64,000 bases of DNA from Blastocystis sp. Blastoise (lineage: Eukaryota > Protista > Bigyra: Opalinata), in the NCBI GenBank assembly GCA_039096225.1, contig JBBPEB010000033.1:930001-994000 (forward strand). The letters are read 5' to 3'. Positions within the stretch are counted from its first letter, which is position 1; each line of letters opens with the position of its first letter. Shown here piece by piece: positions 828 through 63,361 of this stretch. The notes beneath the pieces are model-generated. The model saw only the letters and a list, made by a program, of their open reading frames with translations, made no database searches and was not told the DNA's origin. The position numbers and the translations under genes were made by a program.

Positions 828-841
828 CACTATGAGGTTTT
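828..841 (+). repeat. Left terminal inverted repeat of the CACTA element
   Basis: tat|CACTATGAGGTTTT. Confidence 0.9.
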
Positions 842-3800
842 TCATGGAAATAAAATGCACACAGTCGCCAAATTACTTTGAATAGTGCTTTTGGTTTATT
901 CCTGCGTCATTATGACGGATTCTTTGTCATAATAAACAAATACTTTCTTTTTAATTGGATATTACTTATATAAAAAAATAAATAATTGGCTCTTTTATCC
1001 AATCATTTTTATTTTGAAGTATTCAGTTTTTATAATTGAGAATTTAAAAGAATTCGTTTTTTGTATTGAAATTGTTAAATTTATTAAACAAAACACTTAT
1101 TTCACAAACCATATACATATACTTATAAACAATAATAGCAATAATAAGAATAATAAAAATAATAGTAATAATAGTAAGAATAATAATAGAAATAATAGTA
1201 GTAAATAAAATGTAATTCATAATTTAGTTCATTTTATAATTTCTATACAGCTTGTTCTCTATATATAAATAAAGGAAAAATAATGAAAAGAATATATAAA
1301 TACAGTATCATTTGGAATCTGAATGTATAGTTTTACTTTATTTACTTATCCTATAAAAAACAATTATTAAAATTAAATAATAACTAAATATACTGTGAAA
1401 TCGTTAAAAACTGAACATTTTCATTGCTATATAAATATATATAAAATATATTTTAAGAACGATATACATTATAAGGACTCTACGAAACTGTTGAAAAGAA
1501 ACTATAAATATATTATCTTCAAATATTTATATATATACTATATCGACTATCAAGATTGATGAAGATCCTAAAAGTATATTGTGTTAACATTAAAGAACCT
1601 AACGAAAGATATTGAAATAGAAATTTGTATATACTATAGTCTTAATTGAATAAAAAAGAATAATATTTGAACTTATATAGTTATTTGTTATTGAAACAAA
1701 ACAAAACAAATTTAAAATAAATCTTTAGAAATAAAATAAAATATGAAACAGAAGAAAATTAAAAAGAAAAGAAAAGAATGACCACAAAAAATTATGGACC
1801 ATATATTAAGCTTTGTATGGTATTTCTTCACAGCATAATTTTAATTGATCAATAGTTGTTTTATTATGTATATATTCATATCCCATCATATATGGAAAAG
1901 GAACTACTTGAATCCATTGACATCTCTAAAAATAAATAAATATCATATAGAATATTAAGACTTACCATTTGATGATTTATATCATTCATAGAGATTCTAG
2001 ATCCATCTATATAGTGTTGACAAGTAAATCCAAAATAATCCATGAATTTTTGTTTATTTTTCCTATTTATCATAGATTCTTTGACACATTTCATAATATG
2101 TAAAGGTTTTATGTTATAATCAATTAAAAACTTATTCTTATACATAATCATCACTTTGCATATATATTTACTAGGGTCACGCCGCAGGTCCGGGGCCTAA
2201 CGGCACCGGACCGCGGCTGCAATGAATAATAAGTGTTTTGTTTTTATTCACTTTCTTTCCTTATTATCTACTATATATTATATAATATATATTATTTATT
2301 AAATATTATCTATAATATGTTACTTATTATCTATAATATGTTACTTATTATATATTATATATATTATTTTATTAACACTTCTTATACTCTATATGGAGAG
2401 TTACAATCATATATTGATTGTAATCAGGTTCAATTCCTGATATAAGAATTAAATTGAATTTTTTGAATAGTATCTGAAAAACTAAAAACAATACTTTAAA
2501 AAAAATAAGAAATCGTTTTTGAATCATTATATTTGTTATTTATTATTTTAAAAATATATTTTGTATTTATAAATAGTTGAGTTACTGCTTTAATTATTAT
2601 GGAGTTTCTAAAGCTAATAAATTTAGAAATGGGTCACAATGTTAAGTATTGAAAGTCATTATTATGTAAAATCATTTTAAATAGATTATAATAAGGTAGT
2701 TTACACTTTCTTTAACCATTTCATAAAACTAAAACGAATCTAACACAACAAAGTCAACATTCATTTTCACTTTAACGACTTAAACACATAATTTTAGAAT
2801 TAATATTAATAATGTCACTCTAAAAAGCATTTCTATACATAAAAGTGTCAGCAATATCGCTTGTAAAGAGACTTCACCATTTTGATATCCAGTGTATCAA
2901 AATAGTTTTAGACATAACTTTCACACAATATAGATCTCATTATGTCATATATTACTTATAGTTGAATGTCTTGAATCTCTGACCTAAAGACCCTTTTTTA
3001 TACATTTTGAAAAGTTAACACACTTATAGTTAATTTAAAAAGCTTATATTTTAACACTATGCTCAACATAACTCTATCAATACATTAGCTACCATTTTGA
3101 CACTCTTTATAAACATTTTTCATTTGGTCATACACTTTGTCAAGAGTATTTTTGTCCCTCCTTTTAATATAATTCAGACTATAAATAATAGTTTGATAAA
3201 TAAAATGTTTTATATTGAATCTCGTCCTTTGGATAATTCATTTCTACATTTTAAAAAAATAATCCCTTTAAACTTGTTTTTAAAAGTCAAAATTTTCATA
3301 GTATAACAAAAACACAATTTTAAAAGAATAGACTTACTCTTTAAAATTTCTGAACAACTCAAACGCATTCTTAATTCACTTGTCAAAAATGAAATTCTCT
3401 TATTTTTTAATATGTTGTAGAGTACATGTTGTTCTATATTAAACAATTTCTATAATTTTAAATCTCTTAATTTAATAACCTATTTTTTCACATTTCTTAT
3501 TGCTTAAAATTTTACACATAATTAAATATATAAATGAAAGTGGAGAATACAAAACTTAATAATAACTCAATCATTGATGTAATTATATCGCTAGTCTATA
3601 TCAGATTAGGTGATAAATGAATGTTATTATAAATTAAAACAATATTAAGGACCACATACTAATAACATTAACTAATTTCAAAATTATCTTAATAGTAAGC
3701 ACAATAAAAATTATAAAAAACGAACAAAACAAAAATAAATAAATAATACTAAGAAAACAGATAATAGAAAGATATTATCTGTGAAAAAAAAAATAATAAT

Positions 3801-3844
3801 AATAAACAAAGCAAAACAAAACAAAACAAAAATAAAATAATATG

Positions 3845-3990
3845 TTAAGTATGCCAACCAAATTAGAAGAACCTATAGAAATAAAAGATAAATATATATA
3901 TATATACCTTCAGCATTAAAGAACTATTCACACCATCACTATATAGATAAAATATATAGATATATATATTAAAAGAAATATAAATATTTG

Positions 3991-4028
<38 letters not shown>

Positions 4029-5166
4029 AGATATATTTTTATTATTAAAATAAAAGCCAACATTAGGGTGATAAGATCCCCTATTAGAAAAGACACCTAT
4101 ATATAATAAATAATAAAAAATATATAAACAATAAAAATATATATACCTTCTAAAGAAGGAACAGAAAAATAAGTATCATATCATAACTGACTTGAAGAAC
4201 CTATATATAATGATAAGATAATTAATAAATTAAAAAAAAAAGAAAGGAAGAAATAAGTATATACCTTTCATTACCTATAATAGAAGACTCGATCAGAATA
4301 GAAGGACCTATATATAAATAATAAATAAAAATAAACTAAATTAAATTAAAAAAATAGACATACCTTAATTATTAACACCTTCAGCAACCACACACACAAC
4401 AATAAAAGAACCTATAAAGAAACAGTAATAGACAAATAATAAATAAAAAAAATAATAATAAATGAATGACAATATATATATATACCTTTAATACCATAGG
4501 AACAGTCTATCTGATCACCAACAACATCAACAGCAGTATTGAAAGCATCAGAAGAACCTAAATATATATAAAAGTAAAAAAAGAAAAATAAATGAATGAC
4601 AACATACCTTCAACACTACACAGATATCTTCATCTACACCACTGTTTACATGCACAGCAACTGAAGAACCTATATATATATATAGAAATAATAAAAAAAT
4701 AATAATAAAATATAAAAATAAATTAAATGATTGGCAACATACCTTCAATACAATAAGAAGAACCTACAATCACATCATTAGAACCATTAGCATCATTTAA
4801 AACAACAGAAGAACCTATAAATAAAGAAAAGTTAAAAAAATAAAAACAAATCATTGACAACATACCTTCACAGTTAGCATAACAGGCAACACCACCACCA
4901 CTGCATAATTCAAATAGCATAGAAGAACCTAAAATAATATAATAAATAATTTAAAAAAAAAGAAATGGAAAAATATATACATTAAAGACCATCATAGCAA
5001 GTACCACCAAGACCAAGAGCATACACAACTGGATTTTATTGAGTAGAAGAACCTAAATATGAATAATAATAACAAATAGATATAATATACCTGATTTTCT
5101 TTGAAATATAAATTATTTTTTATTTCCAGACCTCCTCCTGGATGACATTTTGTTGTTTTTAGACAT
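3845..5166 (-). pseudogene. Tandem micro-exon array (about 12 exons, internal ones 31-72 nt) carried in the Helitron
   Basis: Repeated ag|GTTCTTCT...GAAG|gtat units separated by 35-86-nt introns. Peptides include GSSMLFELCSGGGVACYANCE, GSSVVLNDANGSNDVIVGSSYCIE and GSSDAFNTAVDVVGDQIDCSYGIK. Several stops and frameshifts are present. Confidence 0.65.
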
Positions 5167-5525
5167 CTTATTTAATAATATAATATACAATTAAGTATTT
5201 GAATATGTATTTAAGAATCCTATTTCATTTGTATTAATAAATATAATAGGGTCTATTTTCAAAATATGCTTCTTTAAACATAATAGAAATCAAAAAAAAC
5301 CTTAATTTTTCATTGATTTATTTACTAAAGTAATAATTGGGTCATTCTTATTTAAAATCATTTTGGGTACCCAAAAAACATAGTTCTTTACTCTTTTTTT
5401 AAATATTTAATTATATTGATTGACTGAGTATGTTTTATTTATTTATTTGATATTGTTTAGTTATTATTTTTATATATATTTGTATGTATATATTTATTTA
5501 TTTAAAATAATACACTTTTCTATAG

Positions 5526-6070
5526 GATTCTTTTGTATTTGTCTTGGTTGTGGTAGTGAAGGGTTCTTGAAGTGGTCTTGGTTGTGTGTAATGGATTACT
5601 TTGTTTCAGGTATATAAATATATTATTTATTTCTTAAGATCTGTTTTTCTTTTTGTTAATTCGTTTTTATTATTTATTATTTTTATTATCAATATTATTT
5701 ATTTAGTCTTTACATATAATTTATTCTATATATTATTAATAATTTTTATTCTATAGGAAAGAAACTTCAATGGATGTGTTGTGGTCTTCGTTGCTAAATA
5801 TTTTCCTTCTTTAATCTGTCGTTCAAGGTTATTTTAAAGGTATATATTTATATTTTATTTATTATTTTTATTATTTATTGTTTACATTTTTTTTTATTAT
5901 TTATTTATTTATTTATTATTTATTTATTCATTTTTTTTATATGTTTATTTATTTATTAATTATATATATATATATTTATATATATATTTATTGTTTATTA
6001 TTTATTTATTTATTTATTTATTTATTATGTTTATTTATTGTATATAGGTTTAATATTCTTCTTAGTTTTT
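5526..6070 (+). pseudogene. Exon-like fragments divergent from the micro-exon array
   Basis: tatag|G...CAG|gtatat and tatag|G...AAAG|gtatat blocks (~5526-5609, ~5757-5839) in intron-like T/A-rich sequence. No recognisable protein. Confidence 0.35.
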
Positions 6071-6485
6071 TTTTTCTTCTTTCTATCTTCGTTCTTCTTC
6101 CTTCTTACTTCTTCCTTCTTCCTCATCCTTCCTACTTACTTCATTCTTCCTTCCTTCTTCTTCCTTCTTCCTTCTTCTTTCTGCCTTCTTTCTTTTCATT
6201 CTTTACTTCTTCCTCCTTCTTCCTTCTTCCTCATTCTTCCTTCATTCTTCGTACTTACTTCTTACTTCTCCCTTCTTCTTCACCTTGGTTCTTCATTCTT
6301 CTTCCTCCTTCCTTCTTCCTTCTTTCTTCTTCCCCATCCTTGATTCTTCCTATTTCCTTCTTCCTCATCCTTCTTTCTTCCTTCTTCTTCATCCTTCCTT
6401 CTTACTTCTTCATCCTTCCTTCTTAAACTTCCTCCTTCCTTCTTCCTTCTTCCTTCCTACTTCCTACTTCCTACTTCCTCCTTAT
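6050..6485. repeat. Degenerate (CTT)n polypyrimidine tract, ~430 bp
   Basis: Almost only C/T on the + strand. Confidence 0.85.
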
Positions 6486-6899
6486 TATATATATATATAT
6501 ATATTATTATTATTATTATTTATAAACTCCCTTTATGCTCTAGAAGGAGAGAAACAATCATTATAGATTGTTTTCAGGTTCAATTCCTGACATGAAGTCT
6601 TATTTTTCTTTTTCTTTAATATTTTTTACGTATTATATATATATATATATTTTCTCTTTTTTTAAACTTATTTTTATCTCTTTTAGATTATACCTTTTAA
6701 ATTTTGACATTATATACATATATCTAACTGTTTATAGTTTTTTTAGACTTCCTCTTCTCAACAACAGTCACAATGAGAACAAATCCATTTTAACTCAAAC
6801 AACTAAGTCATCTCAAAACTGTTTGAATCAATTAATATAGACGTCTATGACATAATTTATCAATTTAAACTGATTTTCAACTCTCAAAAGTAAGCAAAC

Positions 6900-7950
6900 C
6901 AAACACACATGTTGACTTTAAAACGTTAAACTCAGTATTAAAAGATAGTTTTTATAGAGTGGACATAAAACATTGATTTAAACAAAAAGGAATGGAAACA
7001 ATTCACTCTTGATACAACTTTACCATTTGACAAAACACTCATCCACAATATTTTCCAAAGTTCTTTTGTTAAAGTGTTTATATAGACATATTATGTATAA
7101 AATGAAAGTCAACTTCTTGAATCTCTTTGTTTAAGATAGTTTTTAAAATATTATGACAAATTGACAACCTTTAACTTATTAGTTAAAGCTAATATTTAAA
7201 GAATAGACTTGATTCAGACATATAAACACAACTGTCATCATCATAACACTTTTAAAGACACTTTACCATTTGGTCATACACTTTGATCAACATATTTTCG
7301 TCCCTTCTTTTAACATAATATAGATCATACACTCTAGTTTAATGAATAAAAGCTCTTATTTTGAATCTCGTCCTCTAAGTCACTCATTTTTACATTTTTT
7401 TAAATTTAAGACCCTTAGAGTTGACCTTTTGACTCAATTTTTCCACAGTGCACGAAATTCACGATTTTGCTCAAACTGAAGTAAAAATAAATTTTAAATA
7501 ATAGTCACAACACCTCACACATCCACTCTTTAAAAATTATTTTAACTGTACTTTTGATATGTTGTAGAGCTACTACAGCTGTACACTAATTAATATCTCT
7601 AAATTTTTTATTCAAAGTCTAAGACTATGTTTTACACATTCTTTTAAATTTGACAACCTTAAACTATTTATTTAAAGCTCTTATTCATAGAATAAACTTG
7701 ACTTAACATTCTATACACATATGCAAACCCTTTTTCTTTTTAAGACACATTTTGTCATTTGGTCATACACTTTGACCTTCATAATTTTGACTCTTCTTTT
7801 AACATAGTATAGAGTATTATCTCTAGTTTATTAAATAAAAGTCATTATATTGAATCTCTCACTCTAAGACCACTTAATTCACATTTTTCAAAATTGTCAT
7901 ACTTAAACTCATTATTTTAAGACTCTGTTTCTACTATAGTAGTTTGATGA
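6900..7950. repeat. Helitron-internal ~245-bp satellite with ~490-bp dimer periodicity (also at ~2750-3450 and ~10370-11900)
   Basis: ttgaatctc occurs at 2971, 3215, 7117, 7361, 7850. Its reverse complement gagattcaa occurs at ~10443, 10932, 11420, 11663. catttggtcatacac recurs every ~490 bp. Confidence 0.75.
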
Positions 7951-8943
7951 CCTATTGATTACTATGATACAATATTAGTCGATTATAAGAAGATCGAAGA
8001 AAATATCGATCACTCAAAAATCGTCTTCAGGAGCTCAAAATCGCTACACCTAGGTTTTCTGACCTCCTGAATCAGAATATGATGTCAAATTAAGAATCTA
8101 AATTTGACCGTTAAGGCCTCACGTGTTCAATATGAAAAAGTATTAAAAAATAGATAAATATAAAGAATAAACACGGATAACGTATATTGTGGGATTGAGA
8201 AAAAATCAAGTTTACCCCATGTTTATTTTCCAATTGTCTGGTCAACAATTTTTATCGGGGTCATCCCAAAGAGCCAATCAAAAACGACTCAAAAATCATG
8301 TTTTCTGTTCTTTTATTAATAACTTTTTAATTATAAATAATATCGCTTAACTAAATATACGGTGCACAACTACACGTTATATCGTATTGAACTGTGTTTC
8401 ACTCAAAAGTTAACTCCCCGTAAGTTTAGAGGAGTTGCGGCGACAAACTATAGTATATAGTAGCCAATCAAATGCATTCTCCAAAAACTGACCAATGGGA
8501 ATTTTTTTGCCTATTCTCATATATATAGTAATGATATATAGAACTAGTAACGTCAAATATATAATCATCTTCTTTCAATAAAAACATTTTTTTTGCGTCT
8601 CGTCTCATTTTGACATCAATACATAATGGAAAATATTTTAAGATGTTCTATATAAATTATAATTGATATGATTAACAATATATACTTTAATATTGAATGT
8701 GTTCAGCTTAATGGTCGTAATTGGTATAGAATGACTTATTGACTCTTTTCGTAAAACTTGTTCAAGTTGTTCAGTGAGATATACCCTGTCAGATTCTATT
8801 ATAAATTATAGAACAATAGTGAAGTATATACCATTTAATTGTCTCATCAGCAAGTTATTAAAGTAATAGTTAATACCTTTAACAATATTTTCTTGAAACT
8901 CCTCAATTCTTTTTATTTGGCTTGATTTATCGTTAGAATTCAT

Positions 8944-9065
8944 AATAAAAAACAAAATAAAAATTTAGATTACTTTTTATCATTATAAAATAACCGCAAA
9001 ATATATAATAAAAATAACCGCAAAATATATAATAATCCAATTTATTTATATTCTAATCAAACAGA
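8944..9065. promoter_or_regulatory. 122-bp bidirectional promoter region with a 2x24-bp direct repeat (aaaataaccgcaaaatatataata, 8987-9034)
   Basis: Lies between the divergent ATGs at 8943(-) and 9066(+). The tandem repeat is seen directly. Confidence 0.6.
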
Positions 9066-12000
9066 ATGAATAAGAATTCTAGGTTAGTTAATGCTTCAAG
9101 TAAGCTTAATACACTCAGCTGTATGTTTGCTTATATATAATATATACAATAAAAAATAATCGCTAATTGAATGAAAAAATTTCCTTAATATTTGTAAAAA
9201 ACACATACTATATAGTGTCATTGTTAGAAGATGATAATAATTTTCAAGAATCACTTCAATCGATAAATAATGATAATGCATTTATAAATGATATTGTGGA
9301 AGTAGTTAGAATCGATGAGAGTAATCTAACTATTATGGAGAAACTGGCTTTATCAATTAAAAACAATACAGTATGTTATATAATGAATCAAATAATCATT
9401 AACTTAAATATAGGTAACATATTCTAATAGAAATGTAGAAAAAGAAGATATTCAACAAATTATTTTTAATCACTGGTCTTCACTAAATATAAGTCAACAT
9501 AAATTGAAAGATATGTTTGAATTTACTAATGAGATAATAAATATTGTGAATCCTTCATTCCAGCAACTAGCTGTTCCATTAAGAGGTCAAGATGCTCTTC
9601 GAAAATATCTCAATCATGTCAATAGAGAGCAACAGTACAGAACTATATATATATCCAACTGTTGTCAACAGCTACTAACGTATGGTGTTGGAAATGAATA
9701 TCCTCCATCCGAAGAATTAGTATGCAATAATACATCATGTACAGATAATTCTTGTATATATATATATCATTACTATATATATGAGAATAGGCAAAAAAAT
9801 TCCCATTGGTCAGTTTTTGGAAAATGCATTTGATTGGCTAATGTATACTATAGTTTGTACCCACAACTCCTCTAAACTTACGGGGAGTTAACTTTTGGTT
9901 GAAACACAGTTCAATACGATATAACGTGTAGTTTTGCACCGTATATTTGGTTAAGCGATATTGTTTATAATTAAAAAGTTATTAATAAAAGAACAGAAAA
10001 CATGATTTTTTAGTCGTTTTTGATTGGCTCTTTGGGATGACCCCGATAAAAATTGTTGACCAGACAATTGGAAAATAAACATGGGGTAAACTTGATTTTT
10101 TCTCAATCCCACAATATACGTTATCCGTGTTTATTCTTTATATTTATCTATTTTTTAATACTTTTTCATATTGAACACGTGAGGCCTTAACGGTCAAATT
10201 TAGATTCTCAATTTGACATGATATTCTGATTCAGGAGGTCAAAAAACCTAGGTGTAGCGATTTTGAGCTCCTGAGGACGATTTTTGAGTGATCGATATTT
10301 TCTTCGATCTTCTTATAATCGACTAATATTACAGCATTGTAATCAATAGGTAATTAAACTACTATAGTTAAAACAAAGTCTTAAAATAATGAGTTTGAGT
10401 GTCACAATTTTGAAAAATGTGAATTAAGTGGTCTTAGAGTGAGAGATTCAATATAATGACTTTTATTTAGTAAACTAGAGATAATACTCTATTCTATGTT
10501 AAAAGGAGAGTCAAAATTATGATGGTCAAAGTGTGTGACCAAATGACAAAATGTGTCTTAAAAAGTAAAAGGGTTTCTATATGTGTTTAGAATCATATAT
10601 TAAGTTTATTTTATGAATAAGAGCTTTAAATAAATAGTATAAGGTTGTCAAATTTAAAAGAATGTGTAAAACATAGTCTTAAACTATGAATAAAAAATTT
10701 AGAGATATTAATTAGTGTACAGCTGTAGTAGCTCTACAACATATCAAAAGTACAAAGAAAATAATTTTTAGAGAGTGGATGTGTGAAGGGTTGTGAGAGT
10801 CTTTTTAAAAATATTTTTACTTCAGTTTGAGCAAAATCGTGAATTTCGCGCACTGTAGAAAAATTGATTTAAAAAGTCAACTCTAAGGGTCTTAAATTTA
10901 AAAAAATGTGAAAATGAGTGACTTAGAGGACGAGATTCAAAATAAGAGCTTTTATTCATTATACTAGAGTGTATGATATATATTATGTTAAAAGAAGGGA
11001 CAAAAATATTTTGATCAGAGTGTATGACCAAATGGTAAAGTGTCTTTAAAAAGTCTAAAGTGATGACTAATTTGTTTATAGAGTCATATAGAGTCTACTA
11101 TGTAAATATTAGCTTTTAAAAATGTGATTAAGTCTTTCAATTAGTAAAAATATGTTCAAAGAGAGTCATAAAATGAGAGTTTTAAGAAACAAGATATTGT
11201 TCAGTATACACTAAGAGACACTCTACAACATATCAAAAATATAGCAAAAACTATTTTTAGAGACTGCATGTGTAAAGGGTTGTGAGAGTTATTGAAAAAA
11301 TATTTTTACTTCAGTTTGTGCAAAATCGTGTTTTTGGAACACTGTAGAAAAATTAACTTAAAAAATCAACTCTAAGGGTCTTAATTTTAAAAAATGTGAA
11401 AATGATTGACTTAGAGGACGAGATTCAAAATTCCCCCTCACTTTCATATAACTAGAGCACATACTCTATATTATGTCAAAAGGAGGGACGAAAATATTTT
11501 GGTCGAAGTAAATGAGCAAATGCAAAAGGTTTATAAAATGTCTTAAAGTGATCACCAATGTGTAGCTAACGCTATACTGAGTATAGTGTGTAAATATTAA
11601 CTCTTACAAATGAGTTTAAGTGTCTTAACCTTTCATAATGTGTCAAAAAGGGTCTTTAAGAAAGAGATTCAAAACATTTACTTTTACTTAATAAATAGTG
11701 TGATAAACTCTATACTATATCAAAAGACTGACGGAAACTGTTTTGATACAGTGGATCTTGAATGGGTAAAGTCTATTTAAAAGTCACTTTTTCGAGTCAT
11801 TTATGATTAAAATAAGTATTTGAGACAACTGAAGAAATATTAACTTTTTAAATAATGTTTTAGTTGTCAAAGTGACAATGAATGTTGACTTTGTTATGAT
11901 TAAAACTTTCTAATTCTTTTAAAAATTATTAAAATGAGTTAAAATTATTTTATTATGCTTATTTAAATGAATTTTATAAATTAAAAATACTTCAAAGTTC

Positions 12001-12491
12001 TTCACATTGTTACTCATTTCTAAAGTTGTTGACTTTAAAAACTCAAAAAATGCTTAAAACAGTTGTTTAATTATTTATAAATACAAAATATATTTTTAAA
12101 ATAATAAATAATATATAATAATACAAATTTCGTTTTTAGTATCTAAGAAATTCTTTTAGTTTTTTACATATTATAAAAAAAAATCTAAAAGATACTTATA
12201 TCAGGAATTGAACCTGATTACAATCATTTACTGATTATAACTCTCCATATAGAGTATAAGAAATGTAATAAATAATAGATAATAAATAATAATATACAGT
12301 AAATTAAAAATAATAGATAATAGATAATAAATAATAATAGATAATAGATAATAAATAATAATATATAATAAATGATAAATAATAAATAACAATAGATAAT
12401 AAATGATAAAAGATACAAAAAGCCAAACATATATGATTTTATGCAGCCGCGGTCCGGGGCCGTTAGGCACTGGACCTGCGGCGTGACCCTA

Positions 12492-12528
<37 letters not shown>

Positions 12529-15205
12529 TTTATCTTTTATTACTATTATTATTAGATATATATTCTAATATCTTTATTCAATATCATTTATGATTATATT
12601 AACATAAACCAGTAACTACTATTATTTCTATATAATTTTATTCTTTTATTATTGTGTCTAATATAAATTAATATATAAAAACGATATTAACTATATCTAT
12701 TGTTAATTCCTTCTTAAAATCTCCATCATTTTTGTTTTATCTATTATCCATTATATAGATACAAAATGTATATGTATGTCCATTATAGAAAGGATAAGAC
12801 AAATTCTTATATCTCCGAAGTTAATACAAGATATTCAGTACTATCAGAAGGATGAAATTATCAGTATTTTAGAAAATCAGGATACTATGGATCCAATTAA
12901 TAATAATCTACCTAGTTACTTGTTTGGTAAAAACTTTAAAAGATACGTATATGATGTCATTAATTCAGGAGATATATTCCTTGCATTCTCTCTAACTACT
13001 GATGGAATATCAGTATTTAACAAAGCCGTTACAGAACAAAATATATCATGTAATCCTATCTTGGTTAAATTGCTTAATTATAAGAACAGTAGAAAATATG
13101 ATACAAGACGCTTCTGGACATATACATGTGTTGAAGAAAGACATATTAACGTTATGTTACAAATAGTAGTTGAGGAATTTAGACTACTTTATGAAGGTAT
13201 TGATATGGATGTTGTAATTAATGGAAATATTGAGAAAAAGAGGGTTATTGGAGTTCTTTTAGATGTCTTTGGAGACACATGTGCTATATCTAAAATTGGT
13301 GGGTTTATGGGTCCAGCGTCAACTTACCCCTGCAGATTTTGCAATATGAAGTGCGACAGGCATAAAATATCATTCCACGAAGGTATAAAAAGTTCTTATC
13401 AAACAATAAAGAATTATATTATTTCTACTGAAAACACAATTAATATCTATTATCCATGTACTAATAATCATATGTATGAAAATAGAAGTTTAATAAGAGA
13501 TAATCATGATGATATATCTATATTATATGACTGTTTTATTAAAAGTTCAAAACTTTATGATAATTGTTTCAATAATACATCCTATCATGTCTACGATAAG
13601 GAGGATTACGAAAAAATAAGACATTTAAATCCAAAAATTCCTTCAAAAGAGTCAATTAAAGTTAAAGCATCACCCTTTGAATTACTATCCTATTTCGACC
13701 CTTCCTCTTCATTCTCTATTGATATAATGCATTTATTTGAAAATGTTACAGACTTATTACTATGCCTTTTATTTAACTTTTGTTCTGAGAAGTATATAGC
13801 CAATCTTTCAAAGAAAAGATCTCAAAAGCAATCTTTAGAACTTCTAGGAAAAATAGCTTTAAGTAAAGAAAACATATCAATATTAGAAGAAAGAATTAAA
13901 TGGATTAATAGTTTTTATAATGACTGTGAATATCAATTCCGTTATATTCTTGATGAAATAAAATTTAGGAAACTAACAGCGCATACAAAAATCTACTTTA
14001 TATCAAAAATATTTCCTATTATTTCCTATGATTTTAGTTATACAGACTCAATGATTATTCCTTTAATAGATATATTCGCTGTTATAGTTCATGATGCTAA
14101 TGTATTAACTTCTAATGACACTGAAGAATTAGAGTTACTAAAAACAAAGTGTTTTATCTTCACATTTCTTAGTGATTTAGTACTTCCTAATGAATTGATT
14201 AACTCCCAAGTACATACTATTCAACATTTATCTAGTTGTATAATTAACTCTGGATCGTTATCTATATCGTCTACATGGGAATCAGAGTCTTATTACTCTA
14301 AAGTAAAACACATTACTCAATCAAGGAATGAATTTAATACTTCATGTTCTCTGGCTTTTTATATACATGAAAGTATAAAACTAGCATCTATTAATCAACA
14401 GAGAGAAAATACTAATGATATAAATGAATTACACTTTGGAAGAGTTATTATACAAGAACCTCTATTAAATACATATACTACTAATTATCTTCCTTTTAGT
14501 GAAATAAGAATAAATAAGAAGTATAATTGCAAACCAAATGTTACTAGGGTTTGTGGAAAGAAAAGGTTAGACAACAAACAATTAACTCCTGATGATACTT
14601 ATAATCTTTTATATTTACTTATTAATGAGGATTCTCAACGAATTAATTCTATTTTATTTTATGACATAAATATAGATGAACTCACATTTCAACAAAGGAT
14701 TGATTTATTAAATGATAAATTTATATATGAAAATGTAATAAATAGAATGAAGAATATAATTCCATTTTTTTATTCTCAAATTCTTGTCAATGATCGAATA
14801 GTGTTTTCTATTTCAGAGATAGATCAAGGAGTAGAACGTATAGATAACTCCTATCTTATGTATTTTGATAACAACGATAGATTTACACCTCATTTAATTA
14901 AATCATTATATTATATTCAAATAGAGGATAGAATGTTTATTAGTTGTTATGATTATCAGGAGTCATCACCATCAACAACAAATCTATATTATTTTTTTAA
15001 TTCATCAATAGAAAGAAGATCACACAATAAACAATTAATAAGTACACAATATAGAATAGGTTATAATAGGTTTATGCCGGTATGGAAGTTTCTTGCATCA
15101 AATATTATTGTTTGTGACGTAAACATAGCAGGAGTAAAAGATCTTGCTCAATATAGAAAGGTATATAATATATTAATATCTTTAATTATTAACCTATATG
15201 TATAG
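9066..15205 (+). CDS. CACTA/En-Spm (Tnp2-like) DDE transposase, 998 aa; exons 9066-9120, 9216-9370, 9414-9753, 12759-15205
   Basis: The 809-aa ORF has En/Spm motifs (LTTDG, DTCAISKIGGFMGPASTYPCRFC, IDIMHLFE, HTIQHL..GSL..STWESES). Three upstream exons join through GT-AG introns in matching phase, total 2997 nt. They supply the N-terminal Cys cluster (ISNCCQQ..VCNNTSC) ahead of CMSIIERIRQIL. Confidence 0.85.
9760..12492 (+). mobile_element. Non-autonomous Helitron (2.7 kb) inserted in the (TA)n of transposase intron 3
   Basis: The 5' TATATATCATTACTATATATATGAGAATAGG matches the other copy. The 3' hairpin at 12446-12482 is followed by CCCTAG|T at 12492, flanked by (TA)n. No RepHel ORF. Confidence 0.85.
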
Positions 15206-15849
15206 AAAGTCCATGATAAAAAGAAAAGATCAAACAGTAAAGTTAAAACAGTATCAGAAACAGAAGTAATTACGTATACAGTATATATTCCACGAGATAA
15301 CATAAAGAATAATGGACTTCTATCTAAACAATAATCAAAGTTAAAAATAGTACTTATGATATTCATGTTTAGGAAAAACAAAATTAGTAATATCTATTCT
15401 TATCATTTCTTTTATAGTATTCTATTTATTATATTTTAGAGTTTTTAAAACACCCATTCTTTTTCATTTTTCTATATATAATCATTTATTCAAAATTTTT
15501 GTTCGGTTTTATAATAACATTTCAAGACAAATCTAGTTATTTAAACTATATGTTGCAAAAACAATTTATTTATATCATTTTTTTTATCAATTAAATTCAA
15601 TAAATTGAAGCATCTATTATACTAATATTATTTTTTTTAGTATTCACTAACAATTAAAATTAATTATGAAATTAAATATCAATAATGTAGAAAAACTTAA
15701 AGAATACAAAACATAACTTATTTATAAATGTATATATATTTGAGTTAATAAGTTTTTCAAGAATGTATATCACACTTTGAGTCCTTTCAAAATGTTATTA
15801 TTTGCAATAGAACATAAATTGGACATTAATAGAAGTGATAAATGTTAAA

Positions 15850-17300
15850 TCTATTATATTATAATTTTAGAAACAAATCTTAGGATGACCAGAAAGAGTT
15901 AGATGAATATTTATTAAGAGATGTAACAAGAAAAGTAACAGTAATATTATATTTGGACAATAAGCACAGTAGTATCAATAATTCTAGAATGAAAAATAGA
16001 ATATAGGTAGTAGTTAAAGAATAAACATTATTAAACTAAATTCTAGTTTTAATAACGGCAAAATGAAGTCATTAATAATTTGAAACCAATTGTTAAGGTG
16101 ATTTCATTAATTGTAGAGCAAGCAGGAGAAATAATAGTAGATAAATAATATAACTATTACTACCTGCAAGAAAATGATAATTACTAACTATATCATGTAT
16201 AAACACGGTATAAAAAGAATGAAAAATATGCAAAAGATTGAAGAAACAAGTAATAATGACGTAACCATATAAAATATAAGTAGTAATATGACAGAATAGT
16301 AGCATAAGTAGTATCGGAAGCTGCAAGATAAGTAGTAATAAAGTAATAATGAAATCATTATTAAAAACATTCACTTGTAATAATACAGTAAGATAATAAC
16401 ATAATTAGTAGATAATAATAAGAGCATATTTTGATAATTTTACATATTATAATACATATTATAAGTAATGATATAGATTATTATATTGGTGTTTTTAGAA
16501 TACAAATTTAAGTAGCAAGAAAAGTAGTAAAAGGATAGCTAATAGAAAAAGAACAACAACATGATAAGGGCAATTATACAATCATGTAAGTTTTATTAAA
16601 GTGAGTAATTAAAATCATATTCAGGCTAGTAGTAGGATAAGTAATAGTATGATGACAACAGGAAATAGTAGAATGAGAATAGTTAATGAAAAATAATTTC
16701 ATTGTAGTTGAATTTATAGATGCAATATTATTTGTAGCAGAAACAAATGAAAAATACAATTAGCAAGATAATTATCAGTAGTATAGAAGTACTCATAGTT
16801 ATTAAATATATTCTAGAATCAGAATAGAATAAATACTTGTATTGGCACGATAATAAGTAGTATAACAAATAGAATAGACTGTATTGTTAAAAGTAACAGA
16901 CGATATTGTAAAAGTATGTAAACAATAATAATTATAGTAAAGTAGAAGAGAATAGTGAATAGTACCAGGCACAGAATTACTAGTAGAACCAATTATTTTA
17001 ATCTGATAAATACTAAAGAATTTTGTAGAACTATTGAAATTATCAGTACTAAAACTCGAAGTATAGCAAGTTCGATAAATAGTAGCATAAATAGTAGGAT
17101 TAGCAATACAATTATATGGCAAATAATCAAATAGCCATAAAAAAAAATCGTAAAAATTGAAAAAACGATACACATAATGAGTAATATGTAATTACTTAGT
17201 AATAAAGAATGAAGCTAATATTTTGTATTACGATGAAACCAATAATACAATGATAAAAATTGCAAATTAGTATATAAGCATATTAAGAATGAAAGGATAG
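15850..17300 (-). pseudogene. Decayed Thr/Ser/Tyr-rich surface-protein-like gene inside the CACTA
   Basis: Fragmented minus-strand ORFs (e.g. TIYATIYRTCYTSSFSTDNF..IYQ..GSTSNSVPGT) with the same codon/strand signature as the host gene at 34-41 kb. Many stops and frameshifts. Confidence 0.4.
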
Positions 17301-17319
17301 TAGATGCAATTAAAGCAAT

Positions 17320-17890
17320 AATTGCAGGATAGGAAACGACATGACTCTATTAAAAGAAATATAGGAAATATAGGAAGAATTGTAAATAACAAATTCGATA
17401 ATTAAAATAGGAATAGTAGTAAATAATAAATCGTTGATCTAATAATTAGGATAGGAAGAATAGAAATAATAATACAAATTGATTCAATAAATAGAAAGGA
17501 AGAATAGGATGAATAAGAATTAATTTTTGTATATAATTGATCTAATAAGTATAATAGGAAGAATGGAAATAATAATAAATTATTGTATATAATTGATTCA
17601 ATAATTAGAATAAGAATAATACGAATAATAGTAAATATTATTAAATAATAAATTCAAGAATTCAAATATGAAGAATAGGCATAACAGTAAATTTTTGTAT
17701 ATAATAGATCTAACAATTAGAATAGGAAAAGTAGAAATAGTAGTAAATAATAAGTTATTGATCTAATAATTAGAATAGGAAGAATATATATAATAATACA
17801 AATTGATTCAATAAATTATTCAATAAAAAGAAAGGAAGTATAATAAATAATTGTAAATAATTGATCAAATAATTAGAATAATAATAGTCA
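17320..17890. repeat. Degenerate minisatellite, ~50-60-bp unit (aattgatctaataattagaataggaagaatagaaataataata), about 10 copies
   Basis: Recurrent ttgatctaataa..aataggaagaa motifs at ~17435, 17538, 17595, 17705, 17758, 17862. Confidence 0.65.
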
Positions 17891-19078
17891 TTAGTAGCCT
17901 AAATTAATGGTAGAATATATAATTAAAAAATTCAAATCAAAAAGTATATATTTCTCTTTTTTAATTATAATTAATGCTTCTTTTTACCTATAAAAATAAT
18001 ATTAAATAGATTATAAAACATATTGAATCAATATATAAAATATACTAATGAAAAATAATTGAAATATGATATATTAATTAAAACATTTTATTCTATACTT
18101 CTACTATAAAGGTAATAAGAACCACGTAATCATTCACTGGAAAAAAATTCTTTTACCATAGAAAACATTAATTTATGATATATCTAAATAGACGTATAAA
18201 TGAATAAATGTAAATAAATATACACATATAAAGAAAAAAGAAAATGTGAACTCAAATCTACACTTTTGAAAAATATTATGGGATCAAACTACATAAGTAC
18301 ATTCTGATACCCATGCTTATGTTTGAAGTAAACCAAATTTGAGTCTATATATAAATAAGTATGAGATACAATACACAATGCTAAAAGATAACAATGTTAT
18401 GCTTACATATTTGATTATAAATACAAATTATGATCACAATGAATATTTTTTGATATTGATAACATAATATATTTAAAAGATAAAAGAAGAATGTAATAAC
18501 AAACAGTCCTTTTGGAAAAAAATTCTATTTAAAAAAATTCCCATGAATTGAATTTTTTAACTTCTTTTCTTTTTAAATATAAATACCGACAATAAAACGT
18601 TTTACAAGTCAGAACACACACTATTCAAACTTGCTTTTTATATTCCATCACTTTCAAAAAGTGGATGAAAGAAAATCATTTTGTCAACAGTCCTAGAGAT
18701 TGATACAAAGTCGTTTAATAATTGTTGACATCACTCAAATGCCACATCTGAAGGAATGAGATGTTTTAAGACATGATTAAAAGACTTAATTATCTGGAAC
18801 CTTCAAAATAACTATTTCTAGGTCTCCAATACAGTTATTTTATGATGATTATAAAGTGCTATATAAAACTATTCATAAAATAGTTATTAGTATTTGAAGG
18901 TCTTATTAATACAATAAAAAAAGTTTCAAACTTCTAAGTTGAATTCTTATTCCCGTAAATATATTTAAAAAAAACAATTCTGGTCTGAACATCCATCAGA
19001 CAAAATGGCCTTGTTTTTTCTGTTCACTGTAAAAAAATTAGTTTTTGGTAAATACTGGTATTGACCCGTAATAATATA

Positions 19079-19212
19079 TTTTGGGTGTTTTTATGAAAAT
19101 TTGGTAATTTTCAGGTTATTTTTGTATTTCAGTTGTATTTCCCGAAGGGAAATCAAGTGAAATCAAAAATACCTGAAATATTACCAAATTTTCATAAAGA
19201 AAACATCCAAAA
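19079..19212. repeat. ~134-bp imperfect palindrome with C-GAA-G triloop upstream of the tyrosine recombinase
   Basis: The arm tatgaaaatttggtaat-tttcaggttatttttgtatttcagttgtatttccc pairs with gggaaatcaagtgaaatcaaaaatacctgaaatattaccaaattttcata around GAA at 19144-19146. Confidence 0.9.
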
Positions 19213-19766
19213 GGTATTTTTCAAATTTTTAAATGGAAATTTTCGATTTTATATAATATAACAGAACCATTATTTACATGAAATGTTACTACATACTTAA
19301 GCTATGAAAACATTAATTCATTAATGAATGATTCTATCTCATACTATATTTAAAGAAAAATAAGAATTAATATTCCTCTTAGCACCACTAACTAATAGCA
19401 TAACATAATATATGAGTGATTAATAAATTAATATTTGATATTTTGACATTTTTTTATAAATATTGTCCAAACTAGATATTTCTATTTCTATGACTTTATT
19501 AAAGGCAAATATTGATATATAAACTGGTCATGAATATAACTATACTATCATATTATATTTATTTTATTAGTTATTTAGTTATGTATGTCTTTTACAATGT
19601 TTTAAATGAAAATAAAAATAACTGTACATTTTTATAATGAATTTAATACAAATAGATGATTATTAAACACATATTTCATAATATACATAGTAAAAAAGAT
19701 TAAAATATAAATAACTAGTAACAAATTTATTTGACATTACATTTTTAATTATTTTTTATTTTTGAT

Positions 19767-20867
19767 ATGAGTGAGATAACGGAACTTAAGAATATAATAC
19801 CTTCTAAAAGTGCCCCACGATATACTATTTATTATAATCAATTTTGTGATTACTCTAAACAGCATGATCCTAAAAATGAGAAAACAAGGGAAGTATTATT
19901 AGAATCCTATATACAATATCTTATAGATAATAAAATGAAGCCTAAAACAATTAAAACCCGTCTCTGTGCTACATATAGAATGATATCAGCTAAGGAAAGC
20001 TATATCATAAACCAGGTAACAGTTGAGAATATTAAATGTGCTCTACGTAACTATACCAAGTTGTGTCCTCCTCCGAAACAAACCCCTTTCTTTTCAGAAG
20101 AACAATGCCGGCAATTTCTTGATAATCCATACAATGATTTGAAGATGATACAGTTGAAAGCTTGTATGGTGATAGCCCTTCACGCTGGAATGCGTCGTAG
20201 CGAAATCTATGATTTAAAGAGAAAAGATTTAGAATTTCTTTCTGATGGTGTTCATATTAATATTGAAAGGAGCAAAACAGACCAGTCTGGTGAAGGATTT
20301 ATTGCAATAGTACCAAGAGAGAAAGAGAATGATTACAAGCTATATAATATAGTGAAGAAATACTATGATACCTTGCCAACTGATCCAGAAGGACCCCTTT
20401 TTCCATCTGTTACTGATGATACATTTGATATGAGAAAGACTGGAATAAAGGCAATTGGTGATTATCCTCGTAGAATAGCTACACTCCTTGGACTTGAAAA
20501 TCCTGATGCTTACACAGGACACTGCTTCAGAAGAACGATGGCGACTCTTGCTGCTGAACATGGTGCGACATCTGATGATCTCATGAAGCAAGGAAGGTGG
20601 AAAGGACATGATGTAGCTAGTCATTATGTTGGAAATACTAATAAGAGAAGATTAGAATTAGCTAAAAGAATCTTACCTCCATCTCCAAAGAAGAAGAATG
20701 CTGATATGGTTTCTGTTTCTGTTTCTCCTACTCGCGATCAACTGGGGAATGTTATGTCTGCTTTATTTAATAACTGCAGTTTAACATCAACTACTATTAA
20801 TATAAATGTAGTGCGTCAAAAAGAAATAAATCAGTCTCAAACGATTTCCCAAGAATTTTCTATTTAA
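19767..20867 (+). CDS. Tyrosine recombinase (phage-integrase family, Crypton-like), 366 aa, intronless
   Basis: Full catalytic set: GMRRSEI (R), RSKTDQ (K), YTGHCFRR (HxxR), GRW (W), VASHY (Y). An N-terminal core-binding-like region and a C-terminal FNNC..TININV tail are present. Confidence 0.92.
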   Translation: MSEITELKNIIPSKSAPRYTIYYNQFCDYSKQHDPKNEKTREVLLESYIQYLIDNKMKPKTIKTRLCATYRMISAKESYIINQVTVENIKCALRNYTKLCPPPKQTPFFSEEQCRQFLDNPYNDLKMIQLKACMVIALHAGMRRSEIYDLKRKDLEFLSDGVHINIERSKTDQSGEGFIAIVPREKENDYKLYNIVKKYYDTLPTDPEGPLFPSVTDDTFDMRKTGIKAIGDYPRRIATLLGLENPDAYTGHCFRRTMATLAAEHGATSDDLMKQGRWKGHDVASHYVGNTNKRRLELAKRILPPSPKKKNADMVSVSVSPTRDQLGNVMSALFNNCSLTSTTININVVRQKEINQSQTISQEFSI

Positions 20868-21331
20868 AATGACTTGAAAACACTTTGTTTTCAGTCTTTT
20901 TCAATTGTAAACTGAATTGTTTTCAGGTTTTTTTGTTTTGTTAAAAAAATTGAAATTTTCCATAAAAATTTGAAAAGATCATTTTATTAATTTAATTCAT
21001 ATTATTGACTCTTAAAACAACATTTTCTTCAAACTGAATAATAAAAAATCATTAAAATACTGACTCCATTAATTATTAAAATTGTGATTGTTAAGATAAT
21101 AAAAAAATATTTTACATTATGTGACCAACAGAAGAAAGAAAATGATGTCAATTTGAATATATAATATATATAATATAGTTTTTAGAGTCAAAAAAAGGAG
21201 TTCACTAAAAAAGTCTCAAAATTTTGTCAAAATTTCTATATTTTGACTAAGTCTCTAAAGGAAGTCTTTTTTTATTGGCCAAATTTGTAGTTTAATGAAA
21301 TTAACCAATCAAAAGCAAAATATGTTTTAGG

Positions 21332-21345
21332 AAAACCTCATAGTG
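21332..21345 (-). repeat. Right terminal inverted repeat of the CACTA element
   Basis: AAAACCTCATAGTG|tat. Confidence 0.9.
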
Positions 21346-21574
21346 TATGTAAAAAATATATATATGATGATATATATGAGAGTCTATTTAAATAGCATAT
21401 ATATTGAGTTCTATACATTATAAAGAGAAATGGTGCATTTTAGTAAAACTGAATGAACAAAACAATGTGAATATGGGAAAAATAAAGCAATTCTTATACA
21501 TATATAAAAAAAGTAATTATTGTAAATACACTAAATGATTTACAAATGCTAATAATATGTTATAAATAAATGTT

Positions 21575-23540
21575 TTATTCGATATTTTTCATCTTAATAA
21601 CATAATATTCCTGACAAGGAATTTGTCTAATGTTAAGATTGGGAAGTGTAATAGTAATATTGTCACCATCTATAGATGAAAATAAATAGAGAGATATATA
21701 ATAATTATGTTTACTATATTTATGTAAATAATATAATATATATATATATAATTAAAAATAAGAATATATATATAATAACAATATCAATAGATACTTTTCT
21801 TGAATTCGACTGGTTTATCGGATCCCATTAAGGTCATAGTACTGTTATTATTGAGAATAGGAGAGGTAATCGTGACCGTATTCTCTACAGGCCATTCAGG
21901 AAGTATTAAATAAACAGCACTTAAATCCTTACGTTCTGTGAAATATACTTTCTTATCTTCATCTTGAACTCTCCAAGGAATACTCTTATATATAGCTTCA
22001 CCGTTGACTTTCATCCAATCACCAAGTTGAAGAAGACGCTCTTGAATAATAGGAATAATACGACCATCACCTGTAGGTCCAATGTTTAATAACTATAAGA
22101 TAAGTTATATATTATTGAAATTATTAAATAGATAATATTAATATAATATTAATATATAATAACATATAATACTAACATAATAATGAATAAAATATTATAT
22201 AATAATAAATATAATAACATATAATATTAACATAATAATAAATATAATAATAACAATAAATAAAACTACTATATAAATACCATATTACCACCATAAGCGA
22301 TAGTAGGAATAAGTTTATCTAAGAGTTCTCTGAAAGTAAAGAATTTATTCGTATAGAAGTCTTCAGTTCTATCATACCCCCAAGAGGTCTTTTGAATGGT
22401 CATCGCCATTTCCCATTTATGAGGTAATAAATGACCAGGTTCATAACGATCGGGACCACTATAATAACCACCATGATTCTGACGCGTATCCTTACCCCAA
22501 CGGTCATTAACGACAACAGTATCTTTTACAGGAGACTCATTATATATATATATATATATATATAAATATATATATATAAAGAAGACTATAGAGGATACTA
22601 TGAGTAATATTCATTTATATTATAAGTGTTTATATATATAAATAAAAGAAGAATATATAGGATGCTATATACATATATATAGAATGACATACAACCAAGC
22701 AAGGAATTCTTTCGATCTCCAATATTCAACAGGTGCCATATATTCACCATCCCCCCAAAGGAGATCAGGCTTATAAGTATTCACTAATTCTTTAATCATA
22801 GGAAGATAATGAGTATCGACATATTGTTGAGTTTTCCAACTATTCTTTTGATCTTGAAGGAATAAAGGATTGAACCATTCATATAAACTATGATAAGCAC
22901 CAAAGGTCATATTGTGTTTACGAACAGCAGTAGCTAATTCACCAAGGAGATCTCGATGAGGACCTACATCCTTAGCATTCCAATTCCAAGTATATTTCGA
23001 AGGAAACATAGTGAAACCTTCATGATGCTTAGAAGTTAAAACAACATATTTAGCACCTAATTATCAACAAAAATTATTGAAAAAAAAGAGAATTAGTATA
23101 AATAATATAATTATAACTAACTAGAAAATAACTAAAATCATTGAACATACCAGACTTTTGAAATACTTCAGCCCAACGTTCAGGATCGTACATTTCAGCT
23201 TTAAAGTCTTTAACAAAGTCTTGATACTTGAAGTTTTCTCCATAAGTTTTCTTATGGAACGCAACAGTCTCAGCATCACCACTACTAAGCTTTTGCCTAT
23301 AAAAAAGATTTGTATACTAAGTGTGAATAATCAATAGAAACAAAACTCTTATATAATTATCAGTAACTCATACCAGTACCATTCAGTTTTGAATGAAGGA
23401 ACAGCAAATAAACCCCAATGAATGAAGATACCTAACTTAGCTTCATCAAACCAAGAAGGAAGAGGACGGCTATCAAGAGACTCCCAAGTAGGGTCATAAG
23501 CAAGTGCTAAAGCAACAAATAATAAGCATAAGAATCTCAT
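21575..23540 (-). CDS. FUCA: Alpha-L-fucosidase (GH29), secreted, multi-exon
   Basis: Signal peptide, then [86 protein letters not shown]. Stop TAA at 21577-21575. Confidence 0.95.
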
Positions 23541-62631: not shown

Positions 62632-63361
62632 ATGAATAATAAAGATACAAAGGAGTATATTTTCACACTTATACTGAGTGATTCATATTTTTTAGTCTTT
62701 TATATGCTCTATATTGTGAGCGTAGCAATTCAGGTATGCATACAATCTTAATTTTTATATATATTATGTGTTTTATGAAGAATTCATCACTTATAAAAAT
62801 TATATTTCTTAGTAAAGGATTCAGAGAATGAAAAAGATACTAACCCTGATAGTGTATACAATTCAATCAATATATTTTTTTGTTAGTAACATAAATATTT
62901 AGAATCAAACAGAGACTTTTAGTATTCCTTGCGGTCTTACAGATAGTTTTCAAACTGGTTACGTGTACAAAGAATCTGAATTAAAGGATGAAAATGCTGG
63001 ATTATTAAAATTTAGTTCTCAAGATAAAATACGTGATTATCAAGATCAAGATTCTGATCATCATTATAAAAGCCGAAGTGAGAATGAGCAGCTGAATATG
63101 ATATTAAATATTAAAGAGCTTGCTTCTGATGATTTAAGGAAGCCATATCCATTTTCTGTAGCAAAAACGAATTCTATAAATGAACAACAATTTGATAGTG
63201 ATTCTTATGATAATGAGTTAATCAATGAAGTTAGAGAATGTCTGGAATATATTGTGGATATAGTTGTAAAAATGAATCAATTATCTTCTGAAATTGAATT
63301 AAAAGAAAAAAATGATACTCCTCCAAAAGATGACAAACATGGATCTAACACAAAATCATGA
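62632..63361 (+). CDS. Hypothetical acidic, hydrophilic protein (multi-exon; 5' end uncertain)
   Basis: Open D/E/N/S-rich terminal exon ~62902-63361, preceded by short GT-AG introns. Confidence 0.45.

Follow-up and report, generated by a model that had tools for sequence, protein, structure and literature searches.

The 20.5-kb stretch at positions 828-21345 of the window, a 64,000-nt segment (C22:930001-994000) of a Blastocystis genome of 33.3 Mb in 34 contigs and about 24% GC, is in our reading an ordinary CACTA transposon that has received three independent later insertions, two Helitrons and a small element encoding a tyrosine recombinase (YR). We put the probability of this reading at about 90%. 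Blastocystis is a stramenopile gut protist, and the source here is a Blastocystis from the gut of a tortoise. A first-pass annotation of the stretch had listed, within perfect 14-bp terminal inverted repeats (TIRs) and a TAT target site duplication (TSD), an En/Spm transposase, a second divergent open reading frame (ORF), two Helitrons, a micro-exon array, a decayed surface-protein gene and a catalytically complete YR, and it had proposed either a new cargo-carrying CACTA class with a built-in resolvase or a nest of independent insertions. It is the nest that our analysis bears out, and the parts are recovered as listed with the exception of the surface-protein gene. The result is that a nest of three transposons inside a fourth, in a Blastocystis genome, is cleanly taken apart.

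The evidence that carries this reading is that the YR sits in a unit with ends of its own. The Crypton-like YR element (19070-20976, plus strand, 1,907 bp) has boundaries in common with two other copies in the genome, a near-identical one at C14:81345-83291 and a more diverged one on C15 at about 648.1-650.06 kb. All three copies begin with AATAATATATTTTGGG and finish with TTTGAAAA, and their flanks are unrelated. Is the YR ever found standalone, then? The C14 and C15 copies are exactly that. Two further subfamilies share the architecture: subfamily 2 (1,979 bp) has copies at C15:124766-126744 and on C26 that are 98.9% identical, and subfamily 3 (about 1,617 bp) has copies at C15:711606-713222 and C28:303206-304822 that are 99.0% identical. 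The genome thus holds three YR subfamilies of 1.6-2.0 kb, each with at least two copies. Inside the 1.9-kb unit there is one gene, a 366-aa tyrosine recombinase (19767-20867, plus strand, intronless here) that matches Phage_integrase at 3.9e-13. All six catalytic residues are present (R143, K170, H252, R255, W278 and Y287), and judging from these the enzyme would be catalytically complete, as first annotated. The unit has no further ORF and no reverse transcriptase (RT), long terminal repeats (LTRs) or TIRs. Neither RT nor RNase H stands beside the YR, as one would look for in a DIRS-like element; the RT genes of this genome are found only elsewhere.

The complementary evidence comes from CACTA DNA that does not contain the YR. 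The YR insertion point lies 369 bp from the CACTA right end, and the insertion splits the right subterminal region into a left part at 18947-19069 (plus strand), which can be aligned to four paralogous right ends, and a part at 20977-21345 (plus strand), which includes the right TIR. This second part has 73-76% identity to the right ends of paralogs, whose last bases are CCTSATAGTG. The four right ends, at C28:427k, C30:169k, C28:311k and C3:404k, are continuous across 19069|20977 without any insert. Two complete relatives, the C30 element (13.0 kb) and the C3 element (13.6 kb), contain no YR in a tblastn search. Genome-wide we count 11 YR loci vs. more than 50 transposase loci, and besides the window's own, one YR locus falls within 5 kb of a transposase ORF.

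Pairings of a DDE enzyme with a YR are known, from the resolution step of Tn3-family transposition and from the ciliate Tec elements. Here the YR is enclosed by perfect TIRs, shares its strand with the transposase and has all its catalytic residues, and in principle it could belong to a new CACTA class as one of its own genes, serving the DDE element as a resolvase or as a second recombinase. We regard this as extremely unlikely, given that the YR occupies a 1.9-kb unit with its own ends that is present elsewhere in the absence of CACTA DNA, that paralogous CACTA ends and complete relatives lack it, and that the composite is found only once in the genome. Moreover, CACTA elements move by cut-and-paste, which makes no cointegrate in need of resolution. 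A MarCry-like or Tec-like composite would have both genes inside the same TIRs in independent copies, and the genome has a single such TIR pair. To the question of whether a DDE transposon has here recruited a tyrosine recombinase, the answer is no.

The host of the nest, a DNA transposon of CMC/En-Spm type (828-21345, plus strand), is recognized by its ends, its TSD, its transposase and its right-end paralogs. The 14-bp sequence CACTATGAGGTTTT stands at 828-841 (plus strand) and, as a perfect inverted match, at 21332-21345 (minus strand), and TAT is read directly outside both TIRs, at 825-827 and 21346-21348; in this the first annotation was accurate. In DNA this AT-rich a 14-bp inverted repeat is weak evidence when taken alone, and a repeat scan returned 637 inverted pairs in 23 kb. 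We take the ends as real because the 14-mer is unique, the paralogous right ends are alike, and relatives have 3-bp TSDs. The exact 14-mer occurs at these two sites only in the whole 33.3-Mb genome, so that a search for other TIR pairs finds one exact pair, that is, a single composite copy. The approximately 20 nt that follow the left TIR resemble the left end of a 13.6-kb CACTA family. The paralogous right ends terminate in CCTCATAGTG or CCTGATAGTG, and the ends of relatives carry either the motif CACTATSAGG or CACTATCAGCG. The complete 13.0-kb relative (C30:156418-169454) is flanked by AGT/AGT, and two compared copies of the 13.6-kb family, 99.95% identical and with the 13-bp TIR CACTATCAGCGAT, are flanked by ATT/ATT (the C4 copy) and GTT/GTT (the C3 copy). 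These 13.6-kb copies lie at C3:1151381-1165003 and C4:1024081-1037703, and nine transposase loci have identical scores; the family holds an internal tandem array of about 2.6 kb, and in the C3 copy the first base of the left TIR is A, not C.

Removing the three nested units in silico leaves 9,521 bp of CACTA DNA. The Helitron-removed DNA and the spliced models were joined in this way, and exon pieces were searched separately against the databases. The main transposase ORF (12776-15205, plus strand) encodes 809 aa and has no direct match in Pfam, even at an E-value of 10. Over 50 other loci in this genome are paralogs of it, with identities of 35-47%, the nearest at 42-47%. A profile built from ten family members retrieved 95 proteins from a library of 1.84 billion; Transposase_21 is present in 8 of the 10 distant matches tested, several of which also have DUF4218, a domain that is touched in 6 of 10 members of the family itself. 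When the family profile is compared directly with that of Transposase_21, hhalign gives a probability of 99.8% (E-value 1.6e-28) over 463 columns, and the alignment pairs the motifs TDG, GD...PCRFC, DxMH..N and H..HL..G..E. The residues D76, D167 and E504 are invariant across the family and could form the DDE triad; the protein also has the DxMH motif and the CRFC cluster. The En/Spm transposase initially proposed is therefore borne out as a CMC/En-Spm-type enzyme by profiles, and from ends, TSD and enzyme together the element is a member of the CMC/En-Spm superfamily, with a 3-bp TSD, CACTA termini and the corresponding transposase.

The transposase gene has at least one more exon, upstream of the main one (9414-9766, plus strand). 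It is found by homology at 9450-9752, both with tblastn to the paralog P0013 and with tblastx to the C30 element: residues 71-170 of P0013 align to 9450-9752, and residues 171-956 to 12755-15121. Helitron B plus 262 bp part the upstream exon from the main exon, and the NCBI gene model begins at 12776, without the upstream exon. Since Helitron B separates the exons and the annotated model starts at 12776, this CACTA copy is probably no longer autonomous. The second, divergent ORF is also there, on the minus strand, interrupted by Helitron A. Its proximal part (8535-8647) and its distal part (1879-2170) are each identified as an open frame with homology to the C30 element, and once Helitron A is removed in silico they join into one open minus-strand frame of 135 codons, reaching from 8647 to 1879. 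This frame is 31% identical over 86 aa, spanning the junction, to an ORF of 228 aa located at the C30 element's left end. This partner ORF belongs to no Pfam family and has no detectable similarity to TnpA.

Both Helitrons are genuine, as shown by their ends, their copies and their insertion between A and T. Helitron A (2171-8534, minus strand, 6,364 bp) is delimited by its ends and by two other copies, at C29:210409-216780 and C8:69420-75787, to which it is 99.3-99.4% identical. Helitron B (9767-12492, plus strand, 2,726 bp), likewise delimited by ends and copies, has at least 28 other copies at 90-94% identity. In the DNA search of the genome the corresponding repeats spanned 2160-8539 (A) and 9755-12584 (B). 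The two elements are mutually inverted and have both ends in common: copies start with TCATTAC and finish with a GC-rich hairpin followed by GTGACCCTAG, with CTAG at the 3′ end. In all 12 of the 12 ends compared, A is the host base that precedes the 5′ TC, and in 10 of 10 the 3′ CTAG is followed by T. After removal of the Helitrons, open frames and homology are continuous across both sites. All of this agrees with known Helitrons: they too begin with TC and finish with CTAG, have a GC-rich hairpin some 10 nt from the 3′ terminus, and insert between A and T, creating no TSD; here too many Rep/Hel genes are found in the same genome, with at least 50 Helitron_like_N (Rep/Hel) ORFs of about 1,500-1,640 aa elsewhere. 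What differs is that the nested copies are without Rep/Hel and that Helitron A consists of Helitron B-like ends with a 3.8-kb insert. Because neither has a Rep/Hel ORF, both are non-autonomous.

The putative micro-exon array that had been described corresponds to a periodic array inside Helitron A. It lies at about 3850-5170 with a period of approximately 125-135 bp, it is present in all three Helitron A copies, and its conserved motifs, read on the minus strand, resemble splice acceptors (TATAG|GTTCTTC) and donors (AAG|GTATG). Repeats of TTCTTCC are also found within Helitron A, at 6074-6483.

Three points weigh against a simple nest. The first is that the left flank of the CACTA element is unique in the genome, which leaves no paralogous empty site for comparison. 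The second is that the composite, of which there is a single copy, could in principle still move as one unit, since both TIRs are perfect. Third, a fragment of a CACTA right end is found about 1.3 kb from the C15 copy of the YR element, and such proximity might reflect a preference for CACTA DNA and not chance alone.

The second point raises the possibility that the nest, however it formed, is now mobile as a unit of its own. There is a precedent for a composite of a DDE transposon and a Crypton YR that amplified: MarCry-1_FO of Fusarium oxysporum, which has a Crypton YR inside Mariner TIRs and moves by means of these, is present in several copies more than 97% identical with shared TIRs and TSDs (PMC3212892). 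The perfect TIRs and the TSD in the window would fit the same scenario. We think it very improbable here, with one TIR pair in 33 Mb, an upstream transposase exon cut off by a Helitron, a partner ORF that is split, and no transposase paralog nearer than the 42-47% given above. Unlike MarCry-1_FO, the composite here is single-copy, and the YR unit moves on its own.

The third point is closer to an alternative in which YR elements favor CACTA subterminal DNA, and the association reflects their choice of site. To the distances of 369 bp in the window and 1.3 kb on C15 one can add a subfamily-3 copy that lies 3 kb from a transposase ORF. On the other hand, for 5 of the 7 characterized YR elements the flanking DNA, compared over about 0.6-3 kb, does not resemble CACTA elements, and the insertion points share no sequence beyond a preference for Y-G-N before the 5′ end. 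Transposons cluster in repeat-rich regions in any case, and a directed choice of CACTA DNA seems to us unlikely.

We thus retain independent insertions into one CACTA transposon, for which we propose the following history. A single CACTA transposon inserted, duplicating TAT. Its own content is about 9.5 kb: two ends, the small divergent ORF, a multi-exon DDE transposase gene, and an interior of about 3.7 kb. Helitron B later inserted upstream of the main transposase exon, at an exon/intron boundary, Helitron A inside the small divergent ORF, and the YR element in the right subterminal region. Taking the identity to the nearest copy as a guide to age, Helitron B (94%) would have come first, then Helitron A (99.3%), and then the YR element (about 99.8%); the order of the last two is uncertain, because it is read from nearest-copy identity only.

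The near-identical C14 copy of the YR element forms a pair with the window copy. It differs from the latter by 2 substitutions, 1 single-base indel and one block of 41 nt, with about 99.8% identity outside that block. The block is of the form GT...AG and lies between codons 156 and 157; in the window the corresponding point is between 20234 and 20235. We considered a frameshifted C14 copy and rejected it in favor of a 41-nt GT..AG intron. The spliced C14 product is identical to the 366-aa protein of the window, and the C14 gene model is taken as spliced because the exact 366-aa protein is recorded in the database on both C14 and C22. In the other YR copies examined, an AT-rich insert with TATAG as its last bases interrupts the gene at this codon, and the window copy is the only intronless one. 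Because the other copies carry the insert at the same codon, we read the intron as ancestral and as exactly lost from the window copy. How would an intron be lost so cleanly? The deletion coincides precisely with the GT..AG borders, and the AGT microhomology at the boundaries does not account for it; this points to spliced RNA and a reverse transcriptase behind the loss. The genome has at least 20 long RT ORFs. A resident copy may have been converted by cDNA, or the entire copy may have come through RNA; the sequence is compatible with both.

The other distinctive property of the YR elements is at their 5′ end. In the window, an imperfect palindrome (19073-19221, plus strand) folds into a hairpin with a CCC-GAA-GGG tip at -51.8 kcal/mol, compared with -18.7 +/- 3.0 for shuffled sequences (z = -11.1). 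A palindrome of about 135-150 nt is present within about 10 nt of the 5′ end in all three subfamilies, and across them 12 of 50 palindrome pairs are kept through two-sided changes. The core, GTAATTTTCAG / CTGAAATATTAC, does not vary between them, and neither does an unpaired T that it contains. The 3′ end of the element (20915-20976, plus strand) repeats the core motif of the hairpin arm, TTTTCAGG. Palindrome and 3′ core motif together have the layout that would be expected of recombinase binding sites. In our reading the YR serves its own element, which has its own ends and its own copies elsewhere, and it would bind at these two places for excision as a circle and reintegration. The ORF of a distant recombinase, at 29% identity, in a 46%-GC Logan contig of SRR11450242, an unrelated public run, is likewise immediately preceded by a hairpin of about 137 nt that is nearly perfect (z = -9.9). 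On C28 (404121-404227) there is a solitary 108-bp fragment of the YR 5′ palindrome, with a normal 5′ boundary and cut within the right arm.

What are these elements related to? The language-model neighbors of the YR are eukaryotic YRs, some with ALOG or DUF3504 domains, which are Crypton-related markers; this neighborhood is no more than a lead. A sequence search of the PDB with the YR gave no match, and word-indexed searches for wider relatives returned seven or eight proteins. One relative, P0104, was set aside for its bacterial-looking context. With Cryptons (Goodwin et al. 2003; Kojima and Jurka 2011, PMC3212892), in particular CryptonS, CryptonA and CryptonI, the YR elements share a YR as sole gene, the absence of RT, TIRs and LTRs, an intron in the gene, sharp copy boundaries, the lack of a TSD, and eukaryotic YR neighbors. 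They differ in that a conserved palindrome, about 135-150 nt long, occupies the very 5′ end, and in being only 1.6-2.0 kb long. Terminal direct repeats of 4-6 bp are described for fungal and stramenopile Cryptons, and animal Cryptons, like the YR elements here, are without terminal repeats (PMC3212892). At seven YR junction pairs we find no consistent terminal direct repeats (4-6 bp, TATGG) and no TSD, and relative to CryptonS the YR elements thus lack the 4-6-bp repeats and the TATGG termini, together with the C-terminal domain and the peptidase gene. The YR copies at C15:124.7k and C28:303.2k are flanked by long direct repeats, imperfect and about 21 bp and 27 bp in length; their siblings are without them, and the repeats do not look like the crossover core of a YR or like a normal TSD.

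The survey of Cryptons (PMC3212892) mentions neither hairpin nor palindrome, and a literature search returned no titles or abstracts that describe hairpin-bearing Cryptons. With considerable doubt, we advance the tentative idea that the YR lodger belongs to a new group of Crypton-like elements, "hairpin Cryptons", defined by the conserved 5′-terminal palindrome with its fixed unpaired bases, a layout shared by the 29%-identical recombinase, in which the palindrome may be used in folded form and some copies may originate from spliced RNA by RT acting in trans. A YR beside a long imperfect palindrome with conserved unpaired bases is also seen for integron attC/IntI and for CTX phage/XerCD. This is a resemblance only, and an ordinary duplex site with inverted arms would explain the palindrome equally well. 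What can be said is that Blastocystis has a compact family of YR transposons with exact ends, a conserved terminal palindrome, and a pair of copies with and without an intron. We know of no experiments on how Crypton-type elements choose and cut their ends, and this family is material for that question.

As a member of CACTA/En-Spm, the host element has the expected 5′-CACTA termini, 3-bp TSD and large DDE-core transposase with CRFC, DxMH and a Transposase_21 profile match, as well as conserved subterminal regions and a long variable interior. It differs from known members in that the transposase has no direct Pfam match and the small ORF no likeness to TnpA, in its host, a stramenopile gut protist, and in the three interruptions of this copy.

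The variable interior is represented by 15206-18946, about 3.7 kb that in genome searches is specific to this copy and has no intact gene. Between 15206 and 18900 there is no open frame longer than 129 aa, and the single 129-aa frame, when searched, has no protein-level match elsewhere in the genome. The decayed surface-protein gene suggested for this region is therefore not supported; the region has short frames (129 aa at most) and a tandem array with 56/112-bp units at 17477-17880. The array is weakly similar (69%) to repeats on other contigs, among them the arrays at C2:791.5k, and the C2:791.5k region also resembles DNA just outside the CACTA element, at 22088-22280. No tRNA or Rfam family was found within 1-23000 of the window.

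A few observations concern transposons in this genome more generally. In the published genome paper, repeats are given solely as bulk percentages (PMC12129017), and the estimate of 5.6-7.5% may understate recent transposon activity. The RT-bearing frames, at least 20 genome-wide, include a dozen of about 2,400-2,800 aa, and most are without stops. Near the far end of the window, at 62845-62854, there is another CACTA-type right end, CCTGATAGTG followed by TAT.

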